The notes beneath the pieces were generated by a model, which was not told where the DNA came from, did not search any database, and saw nothing but the letters and a program-made list of their open reading frames with translations. 64,000 bases of DNA from Styela clava (lineage: Eukaryota): assembly GCF_964204865.1 (NCBI RefSeq), contig NC_135259.1, positions 14,012,001-14,076,000 of the forward strand, read 5' to 3'. Of this stretch, positions 3,572-26,997 are shown piece after piece. Numbering within the stretch: the stretch's first letter is position 1; every line of letters begins with the position of its first letter. The position numbers and the translations under genes were made by a program.

Positions 3572-4216
3572 ATGGCTGTGAGAATTTCTACAATTCTAGT
3601 TTTATTCAACGCCTTGTTCTACATTGTTTGCTGTCAAAACTGCGGCCTCCCAGAACCTCAAAGAAAAATCAACTTCAAAAGATTGAAGGGAGTTTGGTAT
3701 AGATCCGTATTGGATAGGGACGGGACCAATGATTGTGTTGCAATTAAAGATATAAAGCCAACGTGTGACGGTTTTAGCTCTAATTTTTTTAATGTGAAAT
3801 ATCCTCAACATTTGGTGTTTGTGGACTGGATTCGCAATGGTTTCGGAGTGTACAGTAGACGTGCAGAGTTAAAAAATTACATCAAAGAGGTTTGTCCAAA
3901 TGGTGGTCAAAACCTTATCTTGCCTAAAGCAACACGGGATTCGAAAATTATTGAATTTAGGAAACATGTCTTCTTCACAGACTATAAAAACTACTTCATC
4001 GTGCTGGCTTGCGGACAGGGAAAAAGATTCACTGTGGTACATACTCCGCACGAACGCCCAACAATCAACGATATGCGCCTGATACACAACAGAATTGCAG
4101 CCATCGGGCATGGCTGGAGTGAAGAGCAGTTATATTTTACTGGTTGCGTCAGTGGAACAAATGGGACAAGCAATGGGACCTTTTTTCCAACAAAAACTGA
4201 AATAAATCAGGGGTAG
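3572..4216 (+). CDS. Secreted lipocalin, apolipoprotein D-like (copy 2), intronless, 214 aa
   Basis: Signal peptide, 'INFKRLKGVWY' and canonical 'TDYKNYFIVLAC'. Aligns end to end with copy 1. Confidence 0.82.
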   Translation: MAVRISTILVLFNALFYIVCCQNCGLPEPQRKINFKRLKGVWYRSVLDRDGTNDCVAIKDIKPTCDGFSSNFFNVKYPQHLVFVDWIRNGFGVYSRRAELKNYIKEVCPNGGQNLILPKATRDSKIIEFRKHVFFTDYKNYFIVLACGQGKRFTVVHTPHERPTINDMRLIHNRIAAIGHGWSEEQLYFTGCVSGTNGTSNGTFFPTKTEINQG

Positions 4217-5599
4217 TTCCAGGACAAAATAAAATTTACAAGAAACCAATGGCATTTATATGGTGAAAGTGATATATTATTCAACCACAAATTTATGATA
4301 TTATTCTGAGTTCTATATAAAAACATGATTCTTTAGTATTCCTGGTTTGTCATACTGTATAAAAAATATGGAATAATTGTATGAGGTATTAATTTACAAT
4401 TTCTACAAATTGACCACCCACGAGGTCTCACATTTATGGACTCCTTGTCTAATAAAGTGCTGTCCAATGCCTTTTCCAAAACTTCTGATTTATTTATAAG
4501 GCATAGCAGTATTTAACAGCACATTTCCTTGTCCTTGAGGTCTATTGAATCATACAACGAGCCTACTTTTTTGGCTTTTCGTTACGAAAGATCAAACTTA
4601 ACACTTATATAGGAAGTATAGAATATTTTTCCTGATTGTTTCTTGTTTTTTGTGTGAAATCCAGCGATATAATGAAATCTATTATATCATGAAAATATAT
4701 TCGGGCTATCATGATGTTGGTCAGCTAATGAAAATGACTAATATTTGGCGATAGTGCATCAATTACTGGAGCACCAACAAGTTTTTTGGAAATGATAAAT
4801 TTATCGAAATCATTTTCTGAAAATCTCTGAAAAAGATGATGTATCAACAATTCCTAGTTTCCCTTTATACTGCAAATATATTAATCAAAACCAAAAGAGA
4901 AAAAGGAAACATAATTACAGCAATTGATTATGCAAACTAGTAAACAAATATAGTTTCACAAATCAAGTGCATTATCACAAAAAAAAAATTTAGTTGTTCT
5001 CTTTCAGTCTCTGTTTATATTCATTTAAATTGCATGGTAAAACCTACAAAATACTCCTAATATTTGGTTACGTTTGCTCCAGCTTAAAGGATTGATATTC
5101 AACGCAACCAATATTATTACATTAGGTCGGTTTCGCTTCCTTTGAAACAGGTAAAGAGGAGATGCTTCTAACAATAGCGTTCACAAACATGAAATTGCTC
5201 ATGTGAGCATATGGGCTTGAACATGTTGTATTTCAAAATTTTAAACTCAAAAAGGAAGTTCCTCTGGGAGCATTAGGTTTGCTACTTTTTCCCTTGACGA
5301 AAAAAATGACCAAATATAGTTTAGGGTTGCATCCGAAGAGTCTTCATTAGTCAATCGTGAACACGCCCGTTCAGAAAAAGAACATGAGAAGATGTTATAG
5401 GATAACTCTTGCCATGTTTTTTAGGGCGAACGTAGTGAGTGTAAATATTGGTGTCGTGCGAGAGACTTTTATGATGACACCTCACAAATTTCATCAATTG
5501 CTTTTGCAATATATATACAGCAAAAAGAGCATCTGCTAGGATAACTTTTTTATATTTACTAGAAACCTAAATTTTGACTATTGATAATTACTATCTGAA

Positions 5600-6181
5600 A
5601 TGAATAAATTCACGTGTCTTTTGGTATTCAACTTTTCGGTTTACTTCACACTATGCTATGGGTGTGGACTTCCAGAGCCCGAGAGAAAAATAAATTGGAA
5701 AAGATTGAAAGGAACTTGGTATAGATCCATGTTACAGAGGAACAACTTCAATGACTGCGTAGCAATCAAAAATATAAAGCCCACAAGTGACGGTTTTACT
5801 TCTAATTTTTACAATTTGAAATATCCTCAACGTTCGGTAATCGTGGATTATGTTTGAAATGGATTCAGAAAATACACGACAAGGTCGGATTTGAAAAGCT
5901 ATGTCAAAGAAGTGTGTTCGAATGAAGGCCGAAGCCTTATAATGCCTGACGCAACACGGAATTCACATCTAGTTGAATTCAGACAATACGTCTTCTATTC
6001 TGATTACAAAAACTACGTTATAACTCTTGCTTGCAATCAAGGAATAAGACGTATAGTTGGACATACTCCACATAAGCGCCCAACAGCCGAAGAAATCCGC
6101 TTGATTCACAACAGAATCGCAAAGATAGGACATGGATGGAGTGAGATGAAGTTGTACTTCACTGGCTGCGTGAAACCGTGA
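5600..6181 (+). pseudogene. Lipocalin copy 3 with one in-frame premature stop (TGA 5855-5857); otherwise an intact 193-codon frame
   Basis: ORF-track pieces 5600..5857 and 5891..6181 are in the same frame. 'VDYV*NGF' aligns to 'VDWIRNGF' of copy 2. GxWY and SDYKNY motifs are retained. AATAAA at ~6243. Confidence 0.75.
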
Positions 6182-6353
6182 CAACAAGGATGCTATCTTT
6201 CCTATGAAAAAGATTTTCAAAAACGCTCACATTTCACAGTTTAATAAAAAGATGACATTATTGCTGTTTCTTGAGCATTTTACAGAAATATATGTTAAAT
6301 TTTGGAACATGAAAATAATTGTCGCCAATGTGTCTGGTAAATTTTGTATGCCA

Positions 6354-6587
6354 ATTTTACGGACCATAAAGCGCTCCCCAAATACGTTTTTTTCTCAAAA
6401 TTCTATTCTGTGCCATAAGCCCGCGCACCTAAAGTATTTATGGATCAGTGCTTTATTGACTACATTCCAAAACCAGCACCAGTGCCAGTTACGCCTCATA
6501 GCCTGGTGATGTATGAATAAAAAACTAATCAGAGCCATTTATTGGCAGTGCGCCTCCTAACCCGGTGAGCCTTATGGTCCGTAAAAT
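6354..6587. mobile_element. MITE, Tc1/mariner-pogo-like
   Basis: Perfect 16-bp terminal inverted repeat: ATTTTACGGACCATAA (6354-6369) / TTATGGTCCGTAAAAT (6572-6587). Superfamily assignment is tentative. Confidence 0.6.
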
Positions 6588-7961
6588 ATTGTGATTTCGT
6601 TTTATTGTTGCTGTTCTATCAGTTTCCTTGTATGCTTGATTTATTAGCTTTGGATGATTTGATGACGTACATATAATTGAGTAATAAACGGAAATATAAA
6701 TGAACTTCAATTATATGTTTAAACTCATATCGTCGCTGCGTTATGTCAGTAATTTTTACACATTCAAAGTATAAAGCAACAATTTGGAAGTTACTGCTGA
6801 AGATATGTTAGGGTAAATTGTATAATTTTTGAAAAAATTCACATCTTTAATTTTCTGTTTTATCCAGTTTAGAGAAACAAACCACTTGAAGGAAAAAATA
6901 ACATGTAATATTGAATATCAGGGCCGAAAAAACTCCTTCAAATTTTGAAAATTCCCAATACACAATTTTTTCCCCTAAAAAATGAATTCCTCAGTACAAT
7001 TTTTATTCCTACTTAACTCAATAAAATTTTATTAGCGCAATGGAATTTATTCAGCTATTTTACAACTTTTCAAAAGATAACACCCAATGTAGAATGACGA
7101 CAAACCTTTTACGAGAGAAAGGTTAGAATACTAGCTTCACGTGAGAAAGGTGTACGAGTCCCTTTTTGTAACTATTGTTGAAGATCCGAGATTTCAATTT
7201 TAACCATGTCATTCATTTTTAAAATAACATAGAAAATTATAAACGAAAAATTGACAATGCAACGCATTTAGGAGTTTCGCTTATATCGAGGGCACTCGAT
7301 TGTCTTACCTGATAATTAGTTAGTTCCGAGTTATTCGTGTATTTGTTAATTATTCATATAAACTTTAGCTACAGTCAAGACACCAAAACACTATTTTTTA
7401 CAGAAAAACAGTCGCCTATAGAGATTTCTCAGGTGAAAATATTACCCAAATCTATCTTTTGTAAATGTGGATGCGCACATTAGCACAAAGAATGTTCCTA
7501 AATGTCGTTTTATTTCAAATAATACCTTTCCTTACCAGAACATTATTGGCAAAGCGCCTGGTTTACAGACAGCCTTGATCTATGGTAGGAACCACTCCCA
7601 AATCCAAAGACGACTGTGGAATGTCAATTAAAGCGTGTTAGGTAACGAATGCTAAATTGACTCACTGTCTTTTCATGGTAATCGACTGTAACCACCTACT
7701 TCCAAAATTTTTATTTCGCTCTATTGTGAGAATAGAAAGGTGTAACTCACTAAATATCTTTTATTTGCCACGTCAGATGCTTACCAGCTGTATACAAAAA
7801 GAAAATTGTAACTCACAAAACTTTTAGACTAAATGCAGTGATTTTATATTTGCTCCATACACATTTTTGAAAAAATTCAATTTGTAATGTTTCCTAAATT
7901 TCAAGTTTTCTCCGAATCTATAGTTTGTTTCATTGTGCATGAGCGCAAAACTTCTTCTCAT

Positions 7962-9850
7962 CTAGTAATCTGTCTTGGGACGCTTCTTCACCCATGCAGC
8001 AATTTCAGGAATTTTGTTTATGCTTTCATAGAGCTTGAACAATTTTGGTGCATTCTTGAACGCATCTTTATTCTGTCCAAGTGCAAAATACCCGTATGCC
8101 ACCAGTGTCAAGTCTGCAAGGCTGATCTAAAAAATAATATTGCGCCGTGAACAAATTGAATTTGGCTATTATTAGTTTGCAACGACTGAAAACAACTGAT
8201 TCGGGACAGTTCGCCTTTTTAATTTTTGAGATAAAATTGTTCATACTTTTTCAAAGATGAGTTAAAAATGAGCTTACCAATATTTTATATCAACTAATCA
8301 TCGCTTGTTTTTAAATGAAGTATAAGGAATCATTTTTATTATTTATTTGTGTAAACATGAAAATAGACTAGAGTTGAAACAATTTTTATTCTGAGAATAT
8401 TTGTGACGGGAACTACGGGTTTAAAATATTCAAAAACATTTGGCATATTTTTCTCGACAAAAAACTAGATTTGCAAAACTTTTACCTGTAATGTAGTATA
8501 TTCACTAATTTAGACGTCAAACTAAATTTCATTAAATCGAAATAGATTTTAGAGTCTAACAAAACCAAATCGACCATCCTTTTTCTGAAACTTATAGTTT
8601 TTTAAAAAATTGAAATAAAATTTCTCAGAATTTTAAAGTAGTTTTAAAATGGTATATATACTGTAACACTCACTTTCGTTCCGAAAAATCCTGTCTTGAA
8701 AGTATCTTCTTGGTCCACTATTTTTTCAATTTTGGCAAGCATACTGGGTATCGTTTCATCTTTGTATTCTTGCAGTTTCTATTGGTAATTGTAAACAGTA
8801 TTGAGTGTTATTAATCTTAAATTCTAATTCAACAGCAAAATGTGTTTCGATAACCCGGTAACAACTGTTTCATTTGACGCATGCAGCATTTATATATTTC
8901 ATTTTCAAATCATTAGAACAATCTAGGAATCTTTTATTTGTAATTCGACGAAGAAAAATAAACAACACTATATTTGTGAGCAAGTTTCAAATGAACGATT
9001 TAAACGAGTTTTCGTTGTGAGTTGACTTTATATTTGCCAAATTTTGACATAGGGCATATATACGATCAAGGGCAAAACAACATTTTATTAATCTACATTA
9101 TTTTCACTTTTTTTGACACCGTTTTTCAATTGTACTCAACAACATACAGGTTTCCAAAAATACTGAACCAGGTCATCTGAAAGATATTCATTCTATCTAG
9201 AATTCTAGAGTTAACATAACTTTTATGCAATATGTCCTAAATTAAGGAAACTTCTGGGTTCAGTTAAAAAGAAATTTTCTTCATTTTCGTAGACGTAATT
9301 AAAAAAATTGATGGGTTTAGATTTTTACTTCTGTGCCATGCGGTACTGGCCTCCAATATTGCCAAAATATCCTTACCTTTTCGTCTCCTTGCGCCTTCAC
9401 CCACTTGTCACCAAGGTCGTCCAAGCATCCACAGAACATGTCAACAAAGAATTGTTCCATGGTACATTCTGGAGTCAGCCCATATTCTCTGGCAAGATAT
9501 CGGGCAATTGCCCCTGATTGGCCGTATCTTACACCATCAAGTTCAAGAGCCGGCATTTGTTCAAGTGGCATTGCTGCAATAAATTAAAATATTTATATAT
9601 ATTATTGATTGAAAACCACTAAAGTTGGCTTAGTTACAAAAAAATCAGTCGATGACAAATTGCAATTGTTATATTATAGGTGCGGATGTCAGCAAAGTAT
9701 AGGCATCTCACATTCTTTGATTTCTTTAGAAGCAAAATCCTCCCATTTATATCTCTTATCTTCATATTCAACTCCTTTGTAAGCAAATATGAGTCTTATC
9801 ACTTCGGCACGACCTCTGGCATCAAAATAATGAAGCTTGTAGGCAGGCAT
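7962..9850 (-). CDS. Glutathione S-transferase, sigma class (HPGDS-like), 201 aa. Coding exons 9850-9712, 9573-9377, 8778-8674, 8126-7962
   Basis: Spliced translation [33 protein letters not shown]...[32 protein letters not shown]...ISLADL...[13 protein letters not shown]. Catalytic Tyr, cis-Pro, QS motif and N-cap SxAD are present. All introns are GT-AG and the total is 606 nt. Confidence 0.93.
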
Positions 9851-10090
9851 TGCTTAAAGACAGTTAAATACGATAATACGTGAGACCTACACGAAATAAA
9901 ACAAAATCTATTTTAATAAATATTCATTGACTATTAAAATGACAAAACGTTATTACTTCTGAAATTAGGGTTTTGGAAGAGATTAAATTTTAAAATTTTT
10001 ACAATCAAATGCGATTGCAGTAATTTAAAAAGGTAATCATGTAAACAGTTTTACAACTCGCAAGTTGCACCTTCGCGAAAGAGTGCTTAC

Positions 10091-10170
10091 CAGCAGACAT
10101 AATACCAAATTGTATGTGTTTTAAGATTTTCTGTTATAGAAAGAAAGAATATTATCAGATGATATATATT
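10091..10170 (-). promoter_or_regulatory. Probable GST TATA-like element and non-coding first exon
   Basis: TATATA at ~10162-10168. Strong donor CTG|GTAAGC at 10091/10090. Acceptor TAG|G at 9887/9886, 36 nt before the ATG. Confidence 0.5.
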
Positions 10171-11247
10171 ATGCAATGCCTAAACATATTCATGAGTTTC
10201 ATTCAAAATTTAGTTGCTTCGTAGCAGCGCAAAGCGCGATAAAAACGCACGGCCCATCCCACCTCACGTTCTGTCTGTCTGGGTACATTCGAATGTTTCA
10301 TCGACTTATATGCCGACCTGGGTGGAGTTTCCTTTTTTTAATATTGTCTACTTTAAGAAATGCACTCTTTTCATCACCTCGACCGAGACGATATTTCTTT
10401 CTCTTGAACAAAGTATTTTATTTAAGACGCCTGACAATGTTTAAATAAGTTTCTGATTAATTGTTTAGTTTAAGATTTTTGCTAACTAGTCCTACATCAA
10501 CCTTCATCTTAAAATAACGCGTTTCCAGGTAGAGGATATATATTACAGTTATCACTGAGTTGCTGACATCTATACAAAAATGTAGTTATTATGAGCTATG
10601 GAAAACAAAATATAGTTGAAACGTTGCAAATGGTTACCCTGAGGTAAAAAAAAAAGTTGACAAAAGAATTTTTCAATATGAATTCAATTTATCGAATGCA
10701 AAATTCGAATACGTTACTTAAAAAGTATCTATTTTTACTTTGACCGCTGTTTCTTCTTATGTATTCATAAACTAATTTGGCTGTGTACCAACTACTAACA
10801 TCTTCCATGGAACAATACCAATTCATTGTATGTCCATGCAAGTAATTGAGCTTGAATACTTATTTGAATTACCTTACAGTTTTACATAACAGAGGCAATC
10901 AGACATTTCATAATTACCGACAAATCTTTTTAAATAAAAGTATATATATATATAGTAAGTTATATGTACATCAAAGACGCTTGTTTGAAAATTGGACCCT
11001 TATTTTTGTACCTGATATAGGGTACATGCCATGGCCGAGAGTGTGTGAATAAGCTGTATAAATTTCATTTAAACGAATAGCAAATGTTCGTTATGACTTT
11101 CAACACAATGGGTGAATGTGAACAGGAATTTATTCCGTGGGCGTAGGCTAATAGTAAGGTGAATTGGGGTTCGTGACACCCTTGTGAGATTTTATCAAAG
11201 TTTGCATTTAGCCGTGAAAATCGGGTCACGGTTGAGCTGAAATTGCG

Positions 11248-11258
11248 ATGAGTCAGCA
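11248..11258. promoter_or_regulatory. Antioxidant response element / CNC-sMaf site (ATGAGTCAGCA)
   Basis: Exact match to TGCTGA(G/C)TCAT, ~1.1 kb upstream of the inferred GST transcription start. Confidence 0.45.
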
Positions 11259-12051
11259 ATACGTATTCTTACGAAATAAATCAGGGAATAATTTAAGCAC
11301 GGAACGATGATGAATATGTCATTGATTCTCCATTTTAATGGCCCTCTCATTCTTTATTTTAATTTACAAGTAAATCATACGGCAAAGAATTATTGCATAC
11401 TGTGTGCCAAAATTATGTTATCGAATGTCGAAGGCCTAAGTTCGTAAAAGAATATAAGTAATATTTGTACATTTCACTCAGATATGGCAACATTGCACTT
11501 TCGGCATAAATATTACATAATACTGTAATAAGTATTAACTCAATATCTATATTGTTAAACTAGTACACAAGATTACTTCCACTGAGTGGTAAATACCCAA
11601 ATAATTTTTTTTAAGAGAAATTGTTTCGTGCTTGTAGTTCTCATATATATTACAGTAGCAAAACGCAGCAACGCCCCAAAATTTCGCCTTTGAGGATAAT
11701 AAAATTCTTGTGATTTTGATTTTTCCTCGTGGAAAACGTAATTATCGTTTTTATTTATTTGCGATATGTTGATGTGATAAAACTGAAAATTTTGAAACTA
11801 ACATTTTTCTGAAAACATTATTGAAATTTGATTTTTGTAAGCTTTCTTTTTATTATTTTAGTGCGCCGTATTGGATGATTTTTTGCAATTTCACAAGTGT
11901 CAATATACAATATCGATCTCCATAAGATAATAACAAAGAATAAGGACAAAGTATCGCACATATTTAGCCAGTCGACAGATGTATCCAGTATGATTATTTT
12001 ACATTGAACGCAACTTCAATATGAAGTCCGATCCGTCTTGTCAACAAAATT

Positions 12052-12265
12052 GGGTGCTCCAGAAGTATATGTACCAACATGTGGGTAACTAACTTTGTTT
12101 GCCTATTTTACATCAAGTTGTGTGAAGGGACTGAAATCTATGGACAAGGGGTATATTCACTTGGCTAACACAGACAGTCCCCAAACTTGTAAGAGAACTA
12201 AAAGAAGAAAAATCGGAATAAAATTATGGCCTTACCCTAACCTGGTACACATACTACGGGAGTAC
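12052..12265. mobile_element. MITE-like dispersed repeat, GGTACTCC...GGAGTACC family
   Basis: Reverse-complement match to 48038-48248. Shares termini and a CCCTAACC motif with 62197-62429. Flanked by AAAATT on both sides. Confidence 0.65.
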
Positions 12266-15200
12266 ACAAAATTGACCCAAATAAAATCTATTAAATATTC
12301 AAATCAATTCATCTGATATGCAATTTAAAATTTTGTTTTTTTAGTATGAGATCATAATATAGCCCGATTTGTGGCTAGTATATATCATACATATATAAAA
12401 ACAATAACTATAATATAAAAAGGCAAAAGGACTCATCAGTTTTATAGTATTCTAGAAATGTAGCCAGGTGATAATGTTAAGCGTTGACAGGCAGTCAGTG
12501 AGATATTTTCTAACAGAAAAATATTAAAATCTTTCCTCATAGTTACTTATGCTATTGATAAAAATGAACACACGTGCAATACCATTTACAAACATGTTTA
12601 AGCACATATTTTCAGCTATTTATTACCATAATCAGGTCTTGACTTTATATTGAAAGTGGCAGTTATCACCCTTTCCATCATTCAATCAACAATTTCGAAT
12701 TCTTCAGTTCGCTCTATTACGACTGTTGTATCATAGTTCATCTGTGCCAAATCTGTTTCAGTCATAGTTGAGAATACATACGTAGAAAACAACATTTAAG
12801 GCCATGTCAGGAATTGCGATCGAACGAAATATATTAATTGTATGTAATACGGTATTGCATAGTGTCAGCAATCATTAAACATCACATAACTACTACGATA
12901 TTTATTCTTTGATTAACTACAGTGTTTGAGATGGAAAAAAAGAAGTAACATTATAACTTTATTTTGGGTCAAAAATTAAGGTTAAGTTAAGAAACTATGA
13001 TTATTTACAACGAGACAAGCTATTGCTAACGCGAAAGGGCTGTAAGCGATATTTCCATCTCACCATACTAGGCGGAACTCTTTGCTCCAATGACCTTGAC
13101 AGACTAAACAAAACATTTTATTCGTTATGGATATGAATGAATTAGGCGTAGACCTGGTAATCAATTTCAATGTGTGGTAATATTGAATAGTTTCAAAATT
13201 TACGCGTCTTAATGGAACCAGTTAAATGAATATATTGATGGCGAAATATATATGCTCGTCTGAGGACCCAAAGCGCTATTTCATTTGTGATGTAAATGAT
13301 CAACGCCAACTAAGATAAAGTATCATGCCAAACTAAAGCTGCCCAACCCGCGGTGTACGCCAGGCTAATTATTGTGGCCGTGCTATAGATGAGTTTGTAC
13401 TAAACTGCACTAAACTGCTAAAGTATACTTCGAGATTTAGTTGTGATTGTTCCGGCCATCCACATCCAAATGTCGGTTCTCCTTATCACACAAGTATCAA
13501 GTCTTGCGTCCTGGTGGTATCGATGTTCATTTTTTTTTTATTTCTCGCTGATCTGTGCGTTTTTTTTCGACAAATTCGAAAGCTATTGTGTGTTTATTGG
13601 CTACGAGACGATGAGAAAAATCATAGGAATAAATTTTGAGACCCTAAATGAATTTTCTGGTGTGAAAGTGGCTCGCGACACTACAAAGTTTGTGCAGGCC
13701 TGTGTTAAAACTACGCATGGTGACTGGTTACTGTAGAACATGGACGTATTTTCAAGCATAAAGCGTAATCAATCGCAGTTAGTAGTATTTCTAGTTTTAC
13801 TTTAGGTTGAGTCGGTATCAAACGCTTCATATCAAATATAAAACGTCTGGGAACGTTTTAAGTAAACTGAATATTTTATACAAAATACAGCTCTAATACC
13901 TGTAATTCATTTCAAATGTGAATGAAATTTTGTGTAAAAAATTCGACAATAAGTCATGATGAAATTAATGAATTTTTGTTTTAGTTGAAGTTCTGTTATA
14001 AGATGACGAGTGGCTCCCAAAATTAATGAATAATGTCACAACCAAGGCTGTCCAGAAGCATAGAAAATTTCCAATCAACTGCGATTTCATAGGCTCGGAC
14101 ACAATATCGGCCCAATTGACATTGTATTATCACAATAAATATTATTACAATGATATAGAGAACCACGAACTGGTCCGAAGTCAATTGCAATCTTTTTTAA
14201 CCTTAACAAAAGTTTCATTCCAATGATTACCCAACGAATAGACGATATGGCTTTCAACACTATGTGGGAGTATAAACAAAAGTTGTTCAAATCCCTTTCT
14301 CCTATAACAAAAAGAAATCCTAAGTTTTTATTTCCGTGGGCGTAAGCAAATATCAGAGCCAAATATGATTCATAGTCACGTTGTGATGTTTTATTAAAGT
14401 TTGCTTTCAATCGTGAACATCGGGTCATGGTTGAGCTGAAATACCGATATGTTTTCTACAAAAAATTAAGTGAATTTTAAGCATGAAACAATGATAAATA
14501 AGGTATGACGGTTTCCAATGGTCGTCACGGCCCAACTGTCATCTCTATGCAACCAGCATGGCCAAAATTTTTGAAAAATTACGTGTTAAAAACTTTGCGC
14601 TATTTTAAGTTAGAATGCCAAATGTTATCGGCAAAAGGTTCTTATAGACAGACAATTTATATTTGATAATACACTGAGATTGTAACAATGCATATTTGAC
14701 TTAACATTTTTTACAGAATAATAGTATTGTCGGTTCAGGAAGTACACTATACGTATGATTATTCCCATTGAAGGTCTCACTGTCTTATTTTCTCATTTTC
14801 TAGAGGAGATGAACATCGCATGACAGGGAGAGTTGACACGAGTTTGCATCAAGGTTCATTTCTCCAAACTCTCTTTTGTCACGAAAATGTTCGTCAAATC
14901 TAGACATCTGTTCTTTCTTGATGTTTTTATTTGCCTTCTTAACGTAAGAAAAGATGAACGTCCATGTTGGAACCTCAACCTCGTGCTTGTTTTATAGCAA
15001 TATTTTAAATTACTAATCCGATTTATAAACAACTGTATGTAATTCAAAAAATTGTATCCTGCACATAAATGTCACATGTATTTTGCCGGCTGAAAGATGG
15101 CTTCAGTATGAATATTTATTCGCAAATGCTCATTCAACAGGATGCCTGGACATGGAACAGTACATTGTGATTTATTCAAACTTACGATAACAATACTTGT

Positions 15201-15585
15201 ACAAAATATTTTTTTCTTGTTTTGCAATATTTGTAGTTTATTTATTTTTTTATCGGTGTAAGTTGAATAAGATCGTATCTAATTCTTTTCACGGTGAGTT
15301 TTATCCCTCGTTTAAAAGTAATATCAAATGCATCATGTTACATAGCCGACAGTGGAAAGATTTTTGTCCGGTTCTCACTCTACTTTATCAGTTTATTTTC
15401 GGGAAATAATAATAATTTCGTTCACAATAAAAAGAATAATTCTCTGCAAAAAAGTAGTTCAATTTAAAAGACTCCAAGGAATTTTTCAAGAGCCATGAAA
15501 GTAACTTATAAGGTAATATATTGGCAATATGCCCATACGCTCCTGTATTTCGTTTTTTCCATATCGATGCATTTCGTGCACCATT

Positions 15586-18500
15586 TTACGATATACCTTC
15601 ACAATCAGGGCGCTCGCAAACTATTGTATCTTTGGCGTCCCCCGGGCAGCCAGAAGCAAGGCCATTATCTGACCGACAAAATCTCATTCGTGAAATTTCT
15701 CCAGATCCACAAGTAACGCTACATGAACTTGATATCCATGGTCCCCACGAAGAATGTTCTGAAAATATATATTTGCATTGAGTTGTGATTAATTTGCACT
15801 GGAGTATTAAAATATTTTTGTTGACGTCTGTATAATTGATTACATCACTTCAATCACTTTGCCATCGTGTTGGCATTGCAAAAAATGATAAATATATGCA
15901 AAAGTGGGTTACAGAAAAATCTAAGATATAATTGACTACAGTCGTGATATTGGAATCTGTTATTGTTTGGGTCGCCTGATTAGGCTTCTCTACAACAATC
16001 CAGAACATGATATATTAAAAATGGGGTACTCCTGAAGAAAGCGCACCAAGATGTCGCACAACCTGAACCATAACCTGGTACACAACCTGAGTTCAGGCTG
16101 TGCGCCATCTTGGTGCGAATACTTCAGCAGTTAGGCGATCGATTATATACAACGAAAAATGAATGGATATCGATTGTCTTATACAAATAGACAACAGAAT
16201 ATTAATTACTATATTATATACGTTATTGTGCAGTTCAAAAAGTCACTTAGATTATAAAAAGTAGTAATTTCTTGCTTTGGCCTAAATATTGCTCAAGGTT
16301 TTTCAAAAGCCTAGATAGTATTGACATTACCAACCATCCAAAAAAAGAATTCAACCAAATATCCTTCTCGAATGTTATTTTTAAGATTGCTACACAAATA
16401 GTGACAGTGTCTGTGCGAAATGGAAATACTTTGATACATGCGAAGGCATTAAAGAAGCAGGAAATAGCACCGCGCAAGTAGTAATGGCAGACGTGTGGAT
16501 GAGTGTTTCAAGCCTTGGACGGGTTCTTTTTTTCTGTAATAATTACTGGAGAAAAAGTTAGGTTCACATTCTTCTGTGTAATCTTAGTTTCAGTGTCATG
16601 GAATGAATTATCGAAACTGTATCAAGATTAACTATACCCTCACATTCGGGATTTTCACACGCTATCTTATCTGTAGAGTCACCAAGGCAACCCACAGCTA
16701 ATCCTCTATCAGATCGACAAAACCTTATTCGTGAAATTTCTCCAGTTCCACAAGTGACGCTACACTTGCCAGCTATCCAGGGTCCCCAAGTAAATGCCTC
16801 TGGGAAAAGGTTTAATGGTGTATTCAACGACTACTTGGGTTTTTACATTTTCCAATGTTTATGTATAATGTTTCATTTATTTAAATTGAAATTATAACAA
16901 TTGAAGTTAAAATAAAACATGCAGTTCACATTGCGATATTGTTGGATTTTGCTGAATACAAATAATCGTTTTTGTTTCACTGGCATTTGAATTGAGGTCA
17001 GTGCTTACAATTCTTCTTTTATTGGTTAGCACGGGCTTGTCCTTTATCCATTTATGCACTATCTTCAAAAATAATAGAACCCGCTATCGCTATTTCAAGG
17101 CGATTCTCGAGAGTAGATAATTTCACTTAGTTTTATTCACCTTCACAAACAGGTTCTTCGCACGCGACTTTCTCTTCAGATATGCCAGGGCAGTCATCAG
17201 CCCTTTCTCCATTCAGCCTACAGTGTCGAAGTCTGAATATTTCCCCATTTCCACAAGTGACGCTACATCCGAACGACAACCAATCTCCCCAGGCAGATAT
17301 TTCTGTCCACGAAAGTATACATTTGTTGAAATCCAATAATTGATGATTAAAATAAGAGTTCAATGTTAAACGAAGGTCAAACAACGAAGATCAAAAACGC
17401 ACATTTTCTGATGAAAATCCCGATAGTGTGACCATTTTATCTTGAAAGAAGGCAAACTCTCTATATCACTAGAGTATTTTATTAACTCATTTACGTCAAA
17501 GTGAAGACAATTTTTAATGACATGTTAACATGTATTTGGTACATTCCATTTCGTGCTCACTTTCGAAATTAAAATGGGAAAAATGACGTGCCAGAGTAAA
17601 AAAAGCGAATTAAATAAGCTAAATTTCGAATATTGTAGGTCTCATGGGATATTGGAAAAAATAATAATGAATAATAAAAAAACTGCCAACGAGGTTTTGG
17701 ATAATATGCTACAGGATGATGAACATAATTGTGTTATAGTTACCTTCACAGCTGGGCTCGTAACACTTTTCGAACATGTTTGTAATGCCTTCGCATTTTC
17801 CATTGTCCACATTCCCGAGCGGCGATTCACAATGTCGTATTTTGATAACCATTCCTTCTCCACACGATACACTACATTTCGAAGATGACCATGAACTCCA
17901 TGCGTATGTAGGATCTATAAAAAGTATGTCTAAATTCATTTGCAAGTACAAGTTGAGTGATTTTGCTGAATTGGTCTCTATATATGTAGGCATATGCAAA
18001 TATGGAGACGGGGTGTGGCAATTTTAAAATTCGATGCAAGCACTACTCATATATACATAGCTTAATTTACAGACTTGATATTTCTCCGCCTTTAGTCCAT
18101 ACGTAGCACTGTGCCGTATACGTATGTTTCAAAATTAGGTATTAATTAGTAGTAGACTATACATAAGTTAGTGAAACCATGAAGTATATTGCCATTGTAA
18201 AAGTGCTAACGAAAATGGAATATACAGACTGAAGCAAAACTAAATATATGATTCTTTGATACCAGTAGTGTTAACTAAAAGTATTTCACTTATTCCAATA
18301 TGTTACATATTTTGTACTAATTACAATCAAAAGCATTCTTACCATAAAACACGATTGAAACTTCCCAATTTGAGTAGCGAATTGATGTAATTCCATTTCT
18401 CGTGGAACCTTCATACCTGGATAACCCGTCAGTTTTCCATACTGTAAATCTCCCACCCTCGTTTGCTATAAAATAATGAGGTATATAATGAGTTAATTTT

Positions 18501-20194
18501 TACCGATATTAGATTCTCAATTTACCTGGATATATAAAACAAAACACTCAACACTCTTAAAGTATACTTAATTCAAAAGAATAATATTAACTTTATCACG
18601 TTTTATATTAGTTTTTTAGATTTTTTCATTTGAATTTTATCGTCTGGCAACAGCACAAACTCACAACAAAAAGTTAAATGTAACAAAACAGAATTGTTTT
18701 CTAACTCCTATTCCCACCATTAATAACTCCACTGTGGGCAGCAGCAGTGCATATGTAGGAATCATCTGTATAAATATCAGTTCCCCATAACACAGGTTTC
18801 TCCCAAGTTGGAAGTGGGCATCCAGGTGGACAAATAACGTCAAACTTAGTTTCCAAGAATTCGCTCGATATTGAAGTACATGATACATTATCTTAAATAC
18901 AAGAGTAATATATGAATATATATAATTCAGTTGATTATAATAAATAATTCTCATAATAATTGTTCATTATTTACTATTTGAGGTACAAGTCTTATTATCC
19001 CGTGATATAATGCGTTATGGTTATTACATACAACCCTTGAAAGTAAAGAGATATGTGGCAATCTAGCGACCCATAGCACTATTGCAAAACTGCATATTTT
19101 GCAAAACAAATATAATGTAGCAAGTGCTGTAAAACTGTATTAAACGGTTCTAGGAAAATTCGCCGTAGGAAATTTCGCCGCATAGGAAAAATCGCCGCAA
19201 GAGCATTTTGCTGTAAAACAAGTATTTGTGAGAAAATCATTTGGGTTCTTGAAGTCCCTTTTTATTTAAAAAAGATTTGTTATTTAAGAGCTTACCCTTG
19301 TTTTTATCACAAATACTTATTTTACAGCAAAATGCTTATGCGGCGATTTTTTATGCTGCGAATTTTCCTATGCGGCCAAATTTCCTACGGCGAAATTTCC
19401 TGCCGCGAATTTGCGGTCACTGTAATAGACACCATAATATCACACATATAAATTTTTGATCGTGAAAAACAGCTTCTAACGTTTTTGATATCTGCAATAT
19501 GCACGAGAAAGCTGCAAAATAATACTGCAAAAAAATCTACACTGACCTGAGCATCTTCTAGAGTTGAAACATTTTGCGTACTCGATCGGCGACTCTTTTC
19601 CGCATAATCTTGAGAAAACGACTTTTTTTCTTTTCTCCAAACATTTTCGTGTTCTATTCATATAGCCTATGCCACAATTAACGCTGCATTCGCCTTCCCA
19701 TGCAGACCATAAATATTCTAAAAATTGAATGCAATGTATTATTAATGGAGCATGTAAATATAAATATCAATTTTCAACATTTGCAATGGCTTTCTACTTT
19801 TCAATGCTTTTGCTCTTTACAAATTTACGAAACTGACGACAAAATGTTCAGCAAGAGTTTCCTTTTAAACGTTCAAAACATTAATTTTGTATTTAGAAGT
19901 AAGAAAATGTTATGATATATGACAACATGAATTATAGAACTAATTTTAACTTGTTTCAAAAAAAATTTTCATTCCAACTCATTCATTTTATGGAATATAT
20001 GACTGATTTATTTATTGACTTTTGTGTTATTGAAATTATTTTTTGGATCCGGGTTAATATTGAGAATACCATTAGACTAAATCAATCGCATTATCATTTT
20101 GGTTTAATATGTAAGTAATTACCCATTCCCAAGAATATAGGTTTCAGAGAATAAAGTTCTTACTTTCTTATTATAAAACAACGTAAATTAGTAA

Positions 20195-20230
<36 letters not shown>

Positions 20231-23200
20231 GATTTAATTTCTATGTAACCATACAGCCTGTAATGCATTCAAATATATATGTTTACCAATATATTATACT
20301 GTATTGAAACACAGAATTTATATTCCAGTCTTACTTGGCACTCCCATCGCATCACAATTTGGCAGAAAGCACAGGTCAATGTCGAAATCAAATCCACCAC
20401 ATTTATCAGAATCAATTGTGTCGTTATCTTTATCGAGACAATATCGTTGCATTATCATTTCTCCTTCCCCACAAGTAACAGTACATGTTTCATCCCACGA
20501 ACTCCAATGATATCCTTCGTGAAAAGAGTTGATAATTTAATTTCTACGAGCTTTTATGAAAAACATACTAGTATTTTATCTGAATTTATTCTCACCTAGA
20601 GAAGCTTCTTCAATTGTTTCGTTGATCCAAGTCAAAAAATTTTGCACTTTTGTATAAATACCCGGTAGCTCTTTCGCCCCACAATGTATGGGCCCAAAAC
20701 TAATTATGCCGTACAGAAAACTTGTACCACTTGTTTTGCATATCAAAGGACCGCCGCTGTCTCCTCCACACGTATCTGCACCGCCTTCTGTGTGTCTGTT
20801 GAAAACTTATTTCATCACAATTGCGATTAATTAAAGTGCGAATAAGTGAAAGTTGAAAAATAGCAAGTTGTGAAATAATTACAAAAGTAATTGTGTCCCA
20901 ATGCAATCTATTGTAAACGATTTTCTTGAGTACGTAGTTTGTTGTTAAAAAAACAACTTTATTTCTGTCGGAAATTTAAAAAAATATTTATAACTTCAAT
21001 ATCGAACCTGGGTGATTGTTTGACTTGACTTTTGCCACCATGCTTTGTCAAAAATCAAAAAAAAAATAATAATAATTCACATCGATATATTTATATTGGG
21101 GTTTTACGTTACGATTGTACAGAATTGGTGGTTTCAAAAATAAGGGTATTGTGAAGTTATTTATCAAAGAAATGGGGGCAACACAGATTGTTTGGTACTA
21201 CCGTAGTATGTTTACCAATTTAGGGTTAGGCCATAATTTTATTTTGTATAATCGAATTTTCAATTGCGCTTCAGTGTTTGATGAAATAATTAGAGTTGGT
21301 CTGACGACTCAAACCTCAATATTGTCTCCATTAAAATAAATTTCGCTTGTTTTCTCAAGTAACATCTTTTCCCTCTGTAAATGTTTGTGGTCATGAGAAC
21401 TACTTTCAAAAAATAGCATAATTAATCATAATTTGGCCTTCAATCAATAATGAATCCTGAAACTGCATGTTTAATTTGAGATAACATGAAACACTAGTTT
21501 CAATATTATACTGTATATTATTATTATTAGGTACTTCTCATACATAGGGCACCAAAGTCTCAAGTGCCCGGGGTCTTTCAAAATGTTAAAAGCATGATCC
21601 GGCCCTGGACAGGATATACTGAACTTTTGAATTCTAGAAACCTTCATTACCGTATCGTCCACCATACAAGTATGAATACTGATAAGTTTATAACAATAAA
21701 ATGAGCTCACAGAAGAGAATTAAGTATAGTCGGTGTGTTAACACTTTTGTTAATAAGTAACTTAATTAACACTTTTCTGCTTAGAGTGGTTGAGAGGGGT
21801 ACAGCTACCATACCTATATCCCGGTATCGGTATTTCGGCAAAAAATCATTAGAAATATTGGGCGTCAATAAGTAACGGTACACTACATTTAAAAATACTG
21901 GTAAAGTATGTATAAAAAAACAAATATCGGATTTAGTGGCGACTGACGCCTTTTAAGTATTGAAGTTACAGTGAAATGCAATTCAAAACAATTAATCACT
22001 GATCTTTTCAACAGTAGTGTTAAAAAGCGTAAGTGGTTTAGCGTTTAAATGGCATTTCACAGTTACTTTCTGAAGTTACGAAAAAATGGTACTTAAAAAA
22101 AATTTAATGACTGACCGTTTTTAACAGTAACACTCAGTAACACTGTTAAAAAGCGCCATTCGTTCATTGTTTAAATGGCATTTTACCGTTACAATTCGAA
22201 GTTACTATAAAATTCTCTTTGAAACTTGTAATGACTGACGCTTTTTAACAGTAATACTGTTGAAAAGATCCAGTCATTCAACGTTTGAACAGCATTTCAC
22301 CGTAACTGTAAAATGGTGATAATATTTTATTTCACTGAAGATATTAGTTTGGGTTACACCGCTCTAACTCAATTTTAGTGGTTCCCAAACGGTGCCAATA
22401 CCTACAATACCCCATTACCTACAATAGAAAAGACACCTACAAAAGAATCAGACATCAACATTGTCTCGGTTGAAAAAATTTAGCTTGTTTTTCTTTCTCA
22501 AGTATCATCCTAAATGTTTATAGTCATGATAACTATTTTAAAAAAATATGAAAATAATCATAATTTGGCTCCAATCAGTATAAATACTGAAACTTACTTT
22601 CAACTTCAAATAAAACGGAACACTAGTTACATTCCTATTATTATATTTCATATATAGGACACCAAAGTCTTGAGCGCATATGGCCTCTAAAGGCAGGATT
22701 CGGCACCGGTTATACCGGGTGTACTCAAGCTTCGTTTACTGCATTGCTGCAGCACGGGTATGAGATAACCAACCTATGACCAAATGTCCTAAAAATCCGC
22801 ATTTGTTTGTATATAATCATTCGTTTTATGCCACTTCGTGGTCAGGGTTACAAACGAGAAGGCGCCGGATCTTTTGTTACGGGGTTTCATTATTAATATT
22901 CACTCTCTTCTCTAGATTTTTAGAATATGGTTTAATTTACTAGAGTACCTAACGAAATATAAATATATAGTCTCTTGTTCAATATAGAAAACTGACCCGG
23001 CACAGACAGTGTTTGCTGGAATCGTGGTTCCGTGTTTTTCGTGCCATTCCTGACATTGATTATTGTCTATTATTTTTACTTCGGCTTCTTGTAAATATTG
23101 ATGCAAATTTCCATCTGTTTTGAAAACAAGAAAATAATAGTGCAGATACAACTAGTAAATTGTAGAGAAAAGGTTAATTAGTTTTATTGTGACGAAACAC

Positions 23201-24474
23201 TTTTGTATTTGTTGTTGTATTTGTATGTTAAAGATACAAATATAATTTAAAATCCTGAACGGGAAATTCTGTTCTATTATTTTTTCATTTCTCGTGTACA
23301 TACGCTCATCATAACCCCATCCGGCAACGGTACACACTGTTCCTTCTGGTATATCAATTATTTCGTCAAATGCATACGGTACAGGTGAAGAGTATCCCAT
23401 GTATTCTGGCCAAGGAATTTTGATGAGACAAATATCATTTGTTAAGTCCCTTGATTGAAAGCCTGAAATAAAGAAAACATAGCTAAAAAAATTTTCGAGA
23501 TTTCATCAAATACAACACCATTCAATAACAGACGAGTAATATTAATATTTACCTTTGTGACAAATTACTTTTTCAGGCTTCGTATTAACTGCCGTGGCTT
23601 CTGGTGCGTCCTTGTCTTTAGTATTGAATGATATTCTTGTTGCAAGTTTTCTAAAAATGTTATTTTCGAAATGAGTTGTATAAGTTGTCAAATAGTTTCT
23701 ATTTTAAGGATAAAACAACAATAAAATATACGTAATGTCATCGAAGTTAATATTCTTGCCCAACGAAACGACAAAAGCTATGTTTAATTTTTATTTACCC
23801 GTCAAAGCAATGAGCAGCTGTTAGTATCCAGGTTTCTGATATTAGACTTCCACCGCATTGATCTGCACCATTGTCAAGCTCGATAAAAACCTGCCAAGGC
23901 CACGATTCCGCAACAGCTCTGACTCCTTTTGCGACCGGAGATAAATCATTTGTACAATTTACTTCGACTTTATACGTTCCGTCACAGTGTATTTGTTCCA
24001 CAGTTTGGTTTTTAACCAAGCATTGTCTTTGAGTTACTGTTACTGAATTCAAGTCAACTTTCCGGTAGGAGTCGCAGTCCGATGGTTTTAGCCATGCTCC
24101 CCATGTACCTCAATAAAAACAAACACTGAATAATGCTAATTTCGAACGTTTATGATTTGAAATGTAGACTTCTAAATACATATTCAACAATCACAAAAAA
24201 AATCGTGCTTATATTATAATAATTTTAGTATTAACTATTATCTTTTATCACAGTTAAAACACGCTCCAAATCATGTTGACCAAAGCCCATAAAGATGATA
24301 ACAATTTTCTAAACAGAACACATCAGAAAAAACTTTATAATTAATATTATCAAAACGATATAATGATTAGCAGCCTACACACATACCTTGGGCAAGGTCA
24401 GGTTCCGAAGCAAATGAAAGCGGCAATTTGGAAATTGATGAGAAACACAGAAAGATTAGTAAAATATTAAACAT
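15586..24474 (-). CDS. Secreted mosaic S1 serine protease: SP, TSP1-like, trypsin, TSP1 x2, LCCL, TSP1 x4 (~763 aa). Exons 24474-24387, 24108-23799, 23650-23553, 23462-23304, 23114-22997, 20795-20596, 20514-20335, 19717-19547, 19062-19032 (tentative), 18863-18718, 18465-18343, 17914-17744, 17302-17141, 16799-16638, 15758-15586
   Basis: Protease motifs [45 protein letters not shown]. Six WxxW..CSVTCGxG..R.R.C-type exons. LCCL motifs [38 protein letters not shown]. Intron phases are consistent throughout. The last exon may splice further (GTATAT donor), but it reads into TAA and has a minus-strand AATAAA at ~15392-15397. Confidence 0.85.
16022..16132. mobile_element. Short palindromic MITE, GGTACTCC family
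   Basis: Arms CTGAAG..CGCACCAAGATGTCGCACAACCTGAAC / GTTCAGGCTGTGCGCCATCTTGGTGCG..CTTCAG. Similar to the termini of 62197-62429. Confidence 0.6.
19145..19405. mobile_element. Foldback-type MITE with long inverted arms built from ~16-bp subrepeats
   Basis: Left arm has three (AGGAAAATTCGCCGYA)-like units then GCATTTTGCTGTAAAA..AAGTATTTGTGA. The right arm is the reverse complement. Lies in protease intron 8. Confidence 0.75.
20198..20226. repeat. (TA)n microsatellite
   Basis: Direct reading. A shorter (TA)n lies at ~747-767. Confidence 0.9.
21935..22310. repeat. Diverged tandem repeat, ~120-bp unit x3, each unit with an internal palindrome
   Basis: Recurring GACTGACGCTTTTTAACAGT..ACTGTTAAAAAGCG and GTTTAAATGGCATTTYACMGTTAC..GAAGTTAC. 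Confidence 0.7.
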
Positions 24475-24552
24475 TACAATATATATATCTCAATAGTAAG
24501 CTATGAAACTGAAATATATAAAATCTATTTATGAATTTGACACAAACGAGTT

Positions 24553-24561
24553 ATGACTCAT
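24553..24561. promoter_or_regulatory. AP-1 site (ATGACTCAT) ~80 bp upstream of the protease ATG
   Basis: Perfect extended TRE palindrome, just upstream of a TATA-like run at ~24515-24522. Confidence 0.4.
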
Positions 24562-26997
24562 GCGTGTTCATCACTTTTAGCGGTATGCTTCAGTTTCAGT
24601 GTAAAATATTTGAATACATATTAATAGTCGTTACGTTGCTTAGAAGTGCAGTATGTGAATTAGCATTGAAATAAAATAACTTGTTTAATTGATTGATTAC
24701 CCTCGCTCGGTGGCTCTTAACATGTTTCCCATTTTTGCTGCGCACTTCGCTTCTAGAGCTGCTTAGAAATAATAATGTTCTCAATCTTTAACGACTAAAA
24801 CTTTCAAAGCAATTGGTCTGGTATAGTTGATGAGAAGCGCGATTTCTTCATAACGATAAAAAGAAAATACCAACAACAAAAACAACAACATCATATATAA
24901 TTACAAAACGATCTAAAATACGTACATTTCGTGTCCAATAAATAGAAAAATTACATAAGTCGCCCAAGCATACTGCTGCCGTTGAAGCAATGAAACTCAG
25001 TGATATCTTGTTGCTTTTTTATTGTGCTGTTACTACTGACCTTACAAACTATACGAGTAGTTATCCTCTCTGCTCAGCCATTGAAATCCCTATAGAAGAA
25101 TATTGGAACGAATATATGTTGTTTTCCTGAAGTGTTTTGTTTCTAATTTCGCCGTAAGCAACTTTTGAATATCAGGCAATGAATTAAAATTTAATCTTAT
25201 TACAGAGTAACCGCAACATTTTTTGTTTCTTTCCTCTTACATACTTATATGTTGGATTTAGGCCAAGTAAAATGTAAACGTAAACGATACAATCTGCTAA
25301 TAAGACTGATCTCAACATCGTCGCATATGAAAATTATACAAAATACAAAACAAATAAAAAATCACTCGTCCCACATTTATTCACAGAGTGCGATGAAAAT
25401 ACAGAATAAGTATGCGTATGATGAAAATCAGTGAATTATTTTTGTATCACTTTTTTGGCTCATAGATGAGAAATATGTGCTATGCAGCAATTCTGATCCA
25501 TTTGAAAGCGAATTATAGAATGTGATGCCAGCACACAACTAAGCGACGAAAGTATACTTTTGTATATACTACAAGTTAGAATAGGTATATATATATATAC
25601 AGTACAAAAATAATGCGATAAAGGAATTCAGTTGGAGAAAAAAAAAAGATCCGGAAAATAAATGAATCTGTTAGCAGCGTCATCAGCCTCGAGTCCTTGA
25701 ATCGACTAGCTTCCTCGAGTATGGGCAGCCGTTTGGTGTATACAAAAGACTGATATAAAACGAGCATTTCGATAAATGAAGACAGTAAGTTTCTTGCACA
25801 GTAAGACCTTTGCCAAAACAACATTCGATTTTTGTGTCATTTTCCGGTTTTCTGTAAAATTTATCTCCTATTGAGATGACAGAGGATATCATCACCGTGT
25901 TGCCTAACTGTGATTTTTTTCGATAAAATGCTTTAGGTTTTTTTACTGAAGTTTTTCATTATTTGAGGTCTGATTTCTCACAGCAAAAGTAAAATCGTCT
26001 GCGTATTGGTCTAATTTGTGCTCGTGACGGCCTCGTTTTATCCCATAAATGTTTGAATTTTGGAGTACAGATCTTGCGGAATGCTCAACACTAATAGCGT
26101 AGAGCAGCATACTCACGAAGCGGCATTGCTTTAATGCCGCTGCAGATTGAGATATCACTTGTTAGTCGACCATTCACGTCAACTTTTTATACAACTTTTT
26201 ATGTCCGAGTACATATCTTTAATAGCATTACATTTCTTGCATCCATGTCCCATATGTTTCAAGACATGAAATAAGAAGTTATGGTTAACCTTATCGAAGG
26301 CTTTCAGGTTATCGATTAAGATGATTGTGCCGAGTGTGTCTTTTTCTTTGCGATGCTTTATTATTGCATCGATATTATGGTGAATTTCATACATGCTTCT
26401 TTCAGGAAGGGAGAATTTCTGGGTCGGTGTTATTATAATGTCCATTGTAGGTGGGAGTCTTTTAACTAAGATTTCGGAAATAATTTTATAGTCCATATTA
26501 AGAATCGTTATCGGTCTCCAGTTTTTTAGGTTTGTCTCGTCGTTTTTCTTAAATAACTTTTGAGATGGAGGATGGGTTTGAATAAGGGCCGAAACTGATA
26601 ATGTTATTATTATTTTGAGTGAACTGGATTTATATTAGGTCCCAAAAGGAAACATAGAATTCGTTGGAGAGCCCGTCCATACCTGGCGAGTTTCGAAGAA
26701 AGTTGATGGCCTCATATATCTACTCACTCGAGACATAATGTTCTGAGGTAAGGATTTTCTCTCTCAGAAATTTGGGTATGCCCCAGCAGTGCCAAATAGT
26801 GTTGCTGATATATATCATTGGTTTCATGTTCTTTGCCCCAAATGTTTAGTAGTATTCCTCTACCACCGACAGCATTTCATCCTATTCGCTGGCTACGGTG
26901 TTGTTTGAAGAGATTAATCTTTCTACCGTTTGTTGCTTAGCCCTTCTTTCGATTTTAACATAGAATGTTTTATTTGGTCGTTTATTTTGCTCTAGTA

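Follow-up and report, generated by a model that had tools for sequence, protein, structure and literature searches.

A Styela clava gene predicted to encode a secreted trypsin-like protease with a tail of thrombospondin type 1 repeats and an LCCL domain

The stretch of DNA analysed here, referred to as the window, comprises 64,000 nucleotides of the ascidian Styela clava (assembly GCF_964204865.1, contig NC_135259.1, positions 14,012,001 to 14,076,000 of the forward strand), and positions are counted from its first letter. On its minus strand, at 24474-15586, lies a gene of 14 exons that was delimited by stop-to-stop translation of 14000-26500 and a scan for splice signals; it begins with an ATG at 24474 and ends with the stop codon TAA at 15588-15586. 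All introns are of the GT..AG type and all module exons are in phase 1 at both ends. A protein search with exon 2 alone returned a 100% identity match, P0002 (708 amino acids), which is XP_077973431.1, the product of LOC120337114 and an ‘uncharacterized protein’ in the NCBI nomenclature. Peptides of 13 of the 14 exons are found in P0002, in order and one junction codon apart, and an older RefSeq model from another assembly (P0356, 713 amino acids) differs from it by 7 residues and is longer by 5 residues at a single acceptor site. The layout is a putative signal peptide, a putative degenerate thrombospondin type 1 (TSP1) repeat, an S1 protease domain, two TSP1 repeats, an LCCL domain and three more TSP1 repeats; Pfam places Trypsin at residues 90-315 of P0002 (3.8e-55) and LCCL at 440-536 (1.9e-22), with five TSP1-type repeats. 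The product is predicted to be a secreted, soluble mosaic serine protease, and in our view LOC120337114 is probably one expressed gene for a tryptic enzyme of ADAMTS-like design, in which a serine protease forms the head and the tail tethers it.

A single spliced RNA contains both the protease exons and those of the TSP1/LCCL tail. Four public sequencing runs from the same organism, X1-X4, which carry no tissue labels, contain 6-15% of the words of the 9.6-kb gene stretch, a share that fits exons only, and their contigs were compared with positions 15000-20999 of the window. The contig joints from exon 6/7 to exon 11/12 (Table 1) coincide with the predicted introns and have ends CT..AC on the plus strand, i.e. 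GT..AG on the gene strand. One X1 contig (contig 2, 1261 nucleotides) holds exon 6, exon 7 and 72 nucleotides of exon 8, plus another 808 nucleotides on the upstream side, a length near the 773 coding bases that exons 1-5 should contribute; another (contig 1, 1345 nucleotides) extends from 82 nucleotides inside exon 8 to about 15071, and the small gap between the two, within exon 8, is spanned by contig 19 of X4. Because the last protease exon (exon 6) is spliced to exon 7 and onward at predicted GT/AG sites, the idea of two adjacent genes is rejected, and the separate transcripts that a preliminary description of this DNA had allowed for are not what the contigs contain. At the 3' end, no splicing takes place at the CEG|GT site of exon 14; an X1 contig continues unspliced past ...CEGIS and the stop codon into about 500 bases of 3' untranslated sequence, and further exons below 15586 were rejected on this ground. 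In the untranslated region the X1 contig shows a 74-base non-canonical gap relative to the assembly, at 15247/15322, and AATAAA/ATTAAA sites begin at 15397, 15246, 15176 and 15120.

One exon of the tail is bypassed in the transcripts seen. Exon 13 has an open frame, six cysteines, a WxxW motif and good splice sites, but the two contigs that pass over this place (X1 and X2) leave it out, and it is missing from both RefSeq models (P0002 and P0356). An assembly slip between similar exons was considered for the joint of exons 12 and 14 but discarded, as exons 13 and 14 have no 20-mer in common and are identical at 72% of nucleotides. One X3 contig touches 16748-16799 and then continues into unlike sequence. 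Exon 13 may be used occasionally, and could represent a cassette exon or one in the course of being lost. Since it is skipped in the contigs and absent from RefSeq, the expressed protein is taken to have 708 amino acids with three repeats after LCCL, and its tail, TSP1 x2, LCCL, TSP1 x3, comprises about 386 amino acids. The preliminary description had read trypsin, TSP1 x2, LCCL and TSP1 x4, with an accessory tail of about 440 amino acids; every one of these modules is present in the DNA where it had been placed, on the minus strand, but the fourth repeat after LCCL is left out of the transcripts and the tail is shorter to match.

The placement of the protease near the N-terminus needs a similar qualification. 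The catalytic domain does precede the TSP1/LCCL tail, but between it and the signal peptide lies a stub of 58 residues with a WxxW motif, an Arg before Cys and four cysteines. When a profile of this stub, built from four paralogs, was compared with a profile of the six TSP1 exons of the gene, hhalign gave a probability of 90.5% (E 1.4e-6, 49 columns); Pfam makes no call here, and the CSxTCG pair is absent. A genuine TSP1 repeat occupies this position in the paralog P0152. The stub is thus a putative degenerate TSP1 repeat, and its likeness to TSP1, together with the repeat in P0152, would mean that the protease is embedded in a TSP1 array and is not strictly first. At the other end, P0002 stops 5 residues after the last TSP1 cysteine, and for this reason no membrane anchor is expected.

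The domain assignments were also obtained exon by exon, with Pfam run separately on each open stretch. Trypsin was found on four of the five catalytic-domain stretches scanned alone (23798-24109, 23155-23502, 22915-23151 and 20579-20806), of which 22915-23151 scored 1.5e-3 and 18.8 bits, under the 20.6-bit cut-off when alone, and the remaining catalytic stretch, 23545-23703, had no Pfam match when scanned alone. Six exons match TSP_1 or TSP1_ADAMTS (E 1.7e-6 to 1.9e-9), and the LCCL domain is divided between two exons. A longer form of exon 3 was rejected: paralog loci with an exon 3 match align only with residues 16/17-48 of the longer reading, and P0002 has 23650-23553.

Table 1. Exons, 3' untranslated region and contig joints of LOC120337114, in window positions (Pfam E values are for single exons)
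Feature	Position	Strand	Content or evidence
Exon 1	24387..24474	-	ATG and hydrophobic putative signal peptide (judged by eye); donor GTATGT, phase 1; P0002 residues 1-29
Exon 2	23799..24108	-	Putative degenerate TSP1 (24108-23936, WxxW and 4 Cys), then S1 start with His57 (TAAHC); Pfam Trypsin 1.5e-13; P0002 residues 31-132
Exon 3	23553..23650	-	S1 domain, short form (KLATRISF...VICHK); P0002 residues 134-165
Exon 4	23304..23462	-	S1 with Asp102 (NDICLIKI) and GWG; Pfam Trypsin 2.5e-4; P0002 residues 167-218
Exon 5	22997..23114	-	S1, Cys168-Cys182 region; Pfam Trypsin 1.5e-3, 18.8 bits (below cut-off alone); P0002 residues 220-257
Exon 6	20596..20795	-	S1 end: Asp189, GDSGGP (Ser195), SFG (Gly216), PGIYT (Gly226); Pfam Trypsin 8.7e-16
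Exon 7	20335..20514	-	Tail TSP1 repeat 1; Pfam TSP_1 3.5e-6; contig joints on both sides
Exon 8	19547..19717	-	TSP1 repeat 2; Pfam TSP1_ADAMTS 1.7e-6
Exon 9	18718..18891	-	LCCL, first half; Pfam LCCL 1.1e-12
Exon 10	18343..18465	-	LCCL, second half; Pfam LCCL 5e-6
Exon 11	17744..17914	-	TSP1 repeat 3; Pfam TSP_1 4.1e-9
Exon 12	17141..17302	-	TSP1 repeat 4; Pfam TSP_1 2.2e-8; spliced straight to exon 14 in contigs
Exon 13	16638..16799	-	Intact TSP1-coding exon, AG/GT sites; Pfam TSP_1 1.1e-8; unused in transcripts seen and in RefSeq
Exon 14	15586..15758	-	Last TSP1 repeat, end ...CEGIS then TAA; Pfam TSP_1 1.9e-9
3' untranslated region	15071..15585	-	As far as the X1 contig extends
Joint exon 6/7	20595/20513		81 bases skipped; runs X1, X2
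Joint exon 7/8	20335/19717		617 bases skipped; runs X1, X4
Joint exon 8/9	19547/18891		655 bases skipped; run X1
Joint exon 9/10	18718/18465		252 bases skipped; runs X1, X2, X4
Joint exon 10/11	18343/17914		428 bases skipped; all four runs
Joint exon 11/12	17744/17302		441 bases skipped; run X3, near-identical joint in X1
Joint exon 12/14	17141/15758		1382 bases skipped; runs X1, X2

Two introns of the gene contain repeats that stand out in the contigs. At 16030-16125, between exons 13 and 14, there is a 96-base near-perfect palindrome with a summed contig depth of 6,000-13,700 in the four runs. It is dispersed in the genome (912 first-look candidates; all 40 of the 40 places scored are 93-100% identical on the best strand) and looks like an element of the miniature inverted-repeat transposable element (MITE) type; a tRNA or Rfam RNA was considered for the very deep signal at 16041-16117, found no tRNA or Rfam match and was set aside in favour of this dispersed palindromic repeat. 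A second repeat lies at 19186-19340, between exons 8 and 9, where contig depth is raised (185-453) with many loose ends in all four runs. Elsewhere in the window, 1.7 kb upstream of the gene start, a 151-amino-acid open stretch on the minus strand (26182-26634) matches RVT_1 at 2.5e-13 and looks like a retroelement fragment. Three tandem copies on the plus strand, at 955-1644, 3566-4213 and 5588-6178, encode a small secreted-looking protein with a signal-like start (...CQNCGLPEP...GxWYRS...), and no Pfam family matched these three stretches when scanned. Finally, an exon on the minus strand at 9320-9583 weakly resembles the N-terminal domain of glutathione S-transferase, at 7.9e-4 and 20.2 bits, a score slightly short of the cut-off.

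LOC120337114 belongs to a larger family. Six-frame genome searches with exons 2 and 6 led to paralogs on contigs 1 and 6, and eight loci were compared peptide by peptide with each exon. All eight show collinear exon-by-exon matches in which the protease exons precede TSP1 exons of the same strand, about 4 to more than 20 of them, so that, with LOC120337114 counted, this head-and-tail arrangement of protease and TSP1 occurs at nine or more loci of Styela clava. The gene is therefore not an isolated case, which weakens the preliminary description's view of it as the best candidate for a novel system in the window. The stub (query residues 1-50) was matched at five of the eight. A single locus, P0008 (contig 1, 5.197 Mb), is collinear with the gene, i.e. 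protease, TSP1 x2, LCCL in two exons, TSP1; it is 56% identical over 99% of P0002 and is the sole LCCL-bearing paralog among the eight loci.

In a maximum-likelihood tree of 18 protease domains, with rows hand-picked from 277 proteins and Polyserase-type matches left out, the Styela rows and one Logan fragment form a clade (100/98), and P0002 and P0008 are sisters (99/98). Because the two are sisters, LCCL appears to have been acquired once, before their duplication. The nearest genomic LCCL exons to those of the gene are in the paralog (64%) and then in an LCCL array at 5.42 Mb of the gene's own contig (45-56%), and at least 49 matches to LCCL are present genome-wide. Exons that encode LCCL stand in tandem arrays, the nearest to the LCCL of the gene after the paralog, on contig 13 at 5.42-5.43 Mb and on contig 14 at 9.745-9.758 Mb. 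Contig 1 carries two clusters of protease-head/TSP1-tail paralogs, at 15.68-15.75 Mb and 5.05-5.21 Mb, on both strands, and one of these paralogs has about 24 TSP1 exons; adjacent repeats in P0008 are near-identical, and exon duplication seems to be ongoing in these clusters. NCBI names paralogs of this family ‘ADAMTS gon-1-like’ and ‘ADAMTS 9-like’. No metalloprotease domain was found by Pfam in the three Styela paralogs scanned (P0008, P0023 and P0096), and these names are artefacts of the TSP1 repeats; they are wrong and should not be propagated.

The catalytic domain, of the chymotrypsin fold (S1A), has the motifs TAAHC, NDICL and GDSGGP, with a complete triad of His57, Asp102 and Ser195. 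The closest solved chains are the catalytic domains of plasma kallikrein, factor XI, enteropeptidase and prostasin (E about 1e-42 to 1e-36), and an origin of the factor B type, which was also considered, is unsupported given that kallikrein, factor XI and enteropeptidase are nearest and Pfam gave no vWA or CCP. In a HMMER alignment, kallikrein Asp189, Gly216 and Gly226 (chymotrypsin numbering) are matched by the Asp located six positions ahead of the Ser and by the SFG and PGIYT motifs, respectively, and the triad and specificity residues named in the preliminary description are confirmed. Every family row that covers the columns concerned keeps the catalytic motifs and Asp189 (P0185 is without the Asp102 stretch), and Gly193, Asp194, Gly216 and Gly226 are likewise retained in the gene and across the family. 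Tryptic specificity, that is, cleavage after Arg or Lys, would be expected of such a domain. By eye there is no Cys at the expected Cys122 position. A family-specific pair of cysteines, one in VICH and one in NDICL, is present or absent together across the paralogs, which suggests an extra disulfide beside Asp102.

The activation site is where the family departs from the usual pattern. Pro-Val-Ala-Lys-Gly aligns with Arg-Ile-Val-Gly-Gly of plasma kallikrein, so that the canonical Arg/Lys15-Ile16 site is absent, and in the family alignment 10 of the 11 Styela-clade rows have a non-basic residue before the conserved Val/Ile/Leu-x-x-Gly, the other having Arg; all three Ciona rows read GR|IVGG. 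Val/Ile16 and Gly19 are kept in the family, and Asp194 throughout. Since Pro occupies the place of Arg15 while Val16, Gly19 and Asp194 are kept, we infer that activation is not by a trypsin-like convertase; either a non-tryptic protease would free Val88, or the enzyme would act as a single chain. The same residues could point to a domain that is catalytically silent or permanently zymogen-like and serves as a binding module of a matrix or adhesion protein, the classical tryptic activating cut being unavailable at the Pro of this gene and at the non-basic residues of most of its relatives. We regard this as improbable, as His57, Asp102, Ser195, Gly193, Asp194, Asp189, Gly216 and Gly226 are kept here and family-wide, and the retention of Val/Ile16 with Gly19 suggests that selection still acts on the N-terminal insertion mechanism.

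If, as we prefer, the enzyme is active and tail-tethered, the family presents a puzzle in protease regulation, since nearly all members have lost the site for tryptic activation and yet keep every catalytic and N-terminal-insertion residue. One speculative solution, to which we give little credence, is that the Styela family gave up the Arg15-Ile16 switch for a new form of activation, in which a non-tryptic partner would cut before Val/Ile16, or the degenerate TSP1 repeat would restrain the enzyme until the tail engages a surface. The two LCCL members would then be proteases triggered by surfaces or microbes, a type of enzyme undescribed in chordates.

As to how rare the layout is, TSP_1 and LCCL occur in one protein only in P0002 and P0008 among the 120 matches listed for the whole protein and the 86 listed for the tail, which bears out the expectation of an unusual architecture. 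These word searches cover proteins of 0.55-1.75 times the query length with shared exact words, and the protein collections exclude unannotated styelid genomes, so that absence of the combination elsewhere is weakly supported. A word search with LCCL only gave 21 candidates, missed even the paralog and is uninformative on absence. Trypsin and LCCL also occur together in amphioxus proteins, with four to nine LCCL domains ahead of the protease. In literature searches that took in main texts outside subscription titles, no paper was found on the gene or its identifier, on the Styela family, on the architecture, or on Styela clava with thrombospondin and serine protease, and supplements might list the gene. 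The preliminary description knew of no such combination in a characterised protein, and no paper describing it has come to light. As a layout it is unstudied, although RefSeq already carries a prediction of the gene, which is a member of a larger family in the genome. As for LCCL domains in other settings, PMC9987951 and PMC10892792 concern glycosaminoglycan binding by cochlin and LCCL adhesion complexes of Plasmodium, respectively.

Several points weigh against an active enzyme that is positioned by its tail. The missing Arg/Lys-Ile site could leave the enzyme zymogen-like and weakly active; the binding partners envisaged for TSP1 and LCCL are taken from other proteins, and enzyme activity, binding and location are read from sequence. 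Regarding the transcript, the junctions of exons 1-5 rest on splice signals, paralogs and the RefSeq model, the reads having been compared over 15000-20999, and the runs are labelled only ‘RNA? (a guess)’, their RNA nature resting on the intron-less contigs. Exon 13 may be used in tissues beyond those sampled.

Among characterised S1A enzymes, plasma kallikrein, factor XI and enteropeptidase have in common with LOC120337114 the triad, the Asp189 pocket and, by inspection, four conserved disulfides. Their accessory domains are N-terminal and they are activated at Arg-Ile, whereas in LOC120337114 the accessory domains stand behind the protease and the corresponding residues are Pro-Val; the covarying VICH/NDICL cysteine pair of the Styela family is an extra relative to these kallikrein-type enzymes.

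In Limulus factor C and the amphioxus LCCL-proteases a single polypeptide contains both LCCL and an S1 protease, as in LOC120337114, but in them the protease is last, while here it is ahead of the LCCL. The amphioxus proteins have no TSP1 (Pfam family lists and a motif scan), and the amphioxus protease falls outside the Styela clade in the tree. Factor C has EGF, CCP (sushi) and C-type lectin modules, whereas the Pfam scan of P0002 gave only Trypsin, TSP1-type and LCCL. These comparisons bear on whether the Styela protein might be a pattern-recognition protease of innate immunity, with an LCCL/TSP1 tail that would detect microbial surfaces and turn the protease on in the manner of factor C or the lectin-pathway proteases; the preliminary description had proposed such a role beside tunic remodelling and fertilisation. 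We consider this unlikely: the modules named above are absent and the domain order is reversed, LCCL is present in only two family members, and the absence of a tryptic activation site makes a simple cascade of such enzymes unlikely. Moreover, factor C binds lipopolysaccharide (LPS) via its N-terminal region and is not known to do so via LCCL, and the link from LCCL to LPS sensing suggested in the preliminary description comes down to a shared domain. The idea draws on the presence of LCCL in factor C and cochlin, on some of the amphioxus proteins being named MASP2-like by NCBI, and on a family that is expanded and variable in repeat number, as is common for immune genes; in addition, the cleaved LCCL domain of cochlin is described as a regulator of antibacterial innate immunity in PMC7526977.

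Among ascidian proteins, the nearest analogues in the literature are sperm proteases. According to PMC11673157, Tast is an ascidian sperm astacin with two to three TSP1 repeats, ascidian proacrosin has a CUB domain at its C terminus that binds vitellogenin on the vitelline coat, and trypsin-like activities function in ascidian fertilisation. Both are thus, like LOC120337114, ascidian extracellular proteases built head first with binding modules behind, and this, along with tandem, fast-changing paralogs that would fit reproductive proteins, raises the prospect of a gamete or egg-coat protease whose tail is tethered to components of the vitelline coat. There is a small chance that this is so. 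The comparison, made by Pfam content only, also shows that Tast has an astacin head and proacrosin has CUB in place of TSP1 or LCCL, and LOC120337114 has no sequence relation to Tast, whose catalytic fold differs.

Another ascidian, Ciona intestinalis, has proteins with an S1 protease followed by TSP1 repeats, the ‘SCO-spondin-like’ XP_026692088.1 and H2Y1T3. They differ from the Styela protein in the cEGF-type modules at their front, in a GR|IVGG site of canonical form and in the lack of LCCL, and in the tree these protease-then-TSP1 proteins fall outside the Styela clade, beside proteins in which TSP1 leads and the protease comes at the end (94/93).

With the ADAMTS proteins the Styela protein shares its plan, namely a secreted enzyme with its catalytic domain first and a TSP1 tail behind. 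The heads differ, a zinc metalloprotease in ADAMTS and a serine protease in LOC120337114, and reprolysin, disintegrin, Cys-rich and spacer domains were not found by Pfam in P0002, P0008, P0023 and P0096. In the tail-tethered protease that we favour, the TSP1/LCCL tail would hold the enzyme on matrix, glycan or substrate, and so decide where and what the tryptic head cuts, which would be the ADAMTS principle with a different head. If this is true, an ADAMTS-style plan was reached independently in ascidians with a serine-protease head, and an LCCL module was inserted into its TSP1 tail by exon shuffling.

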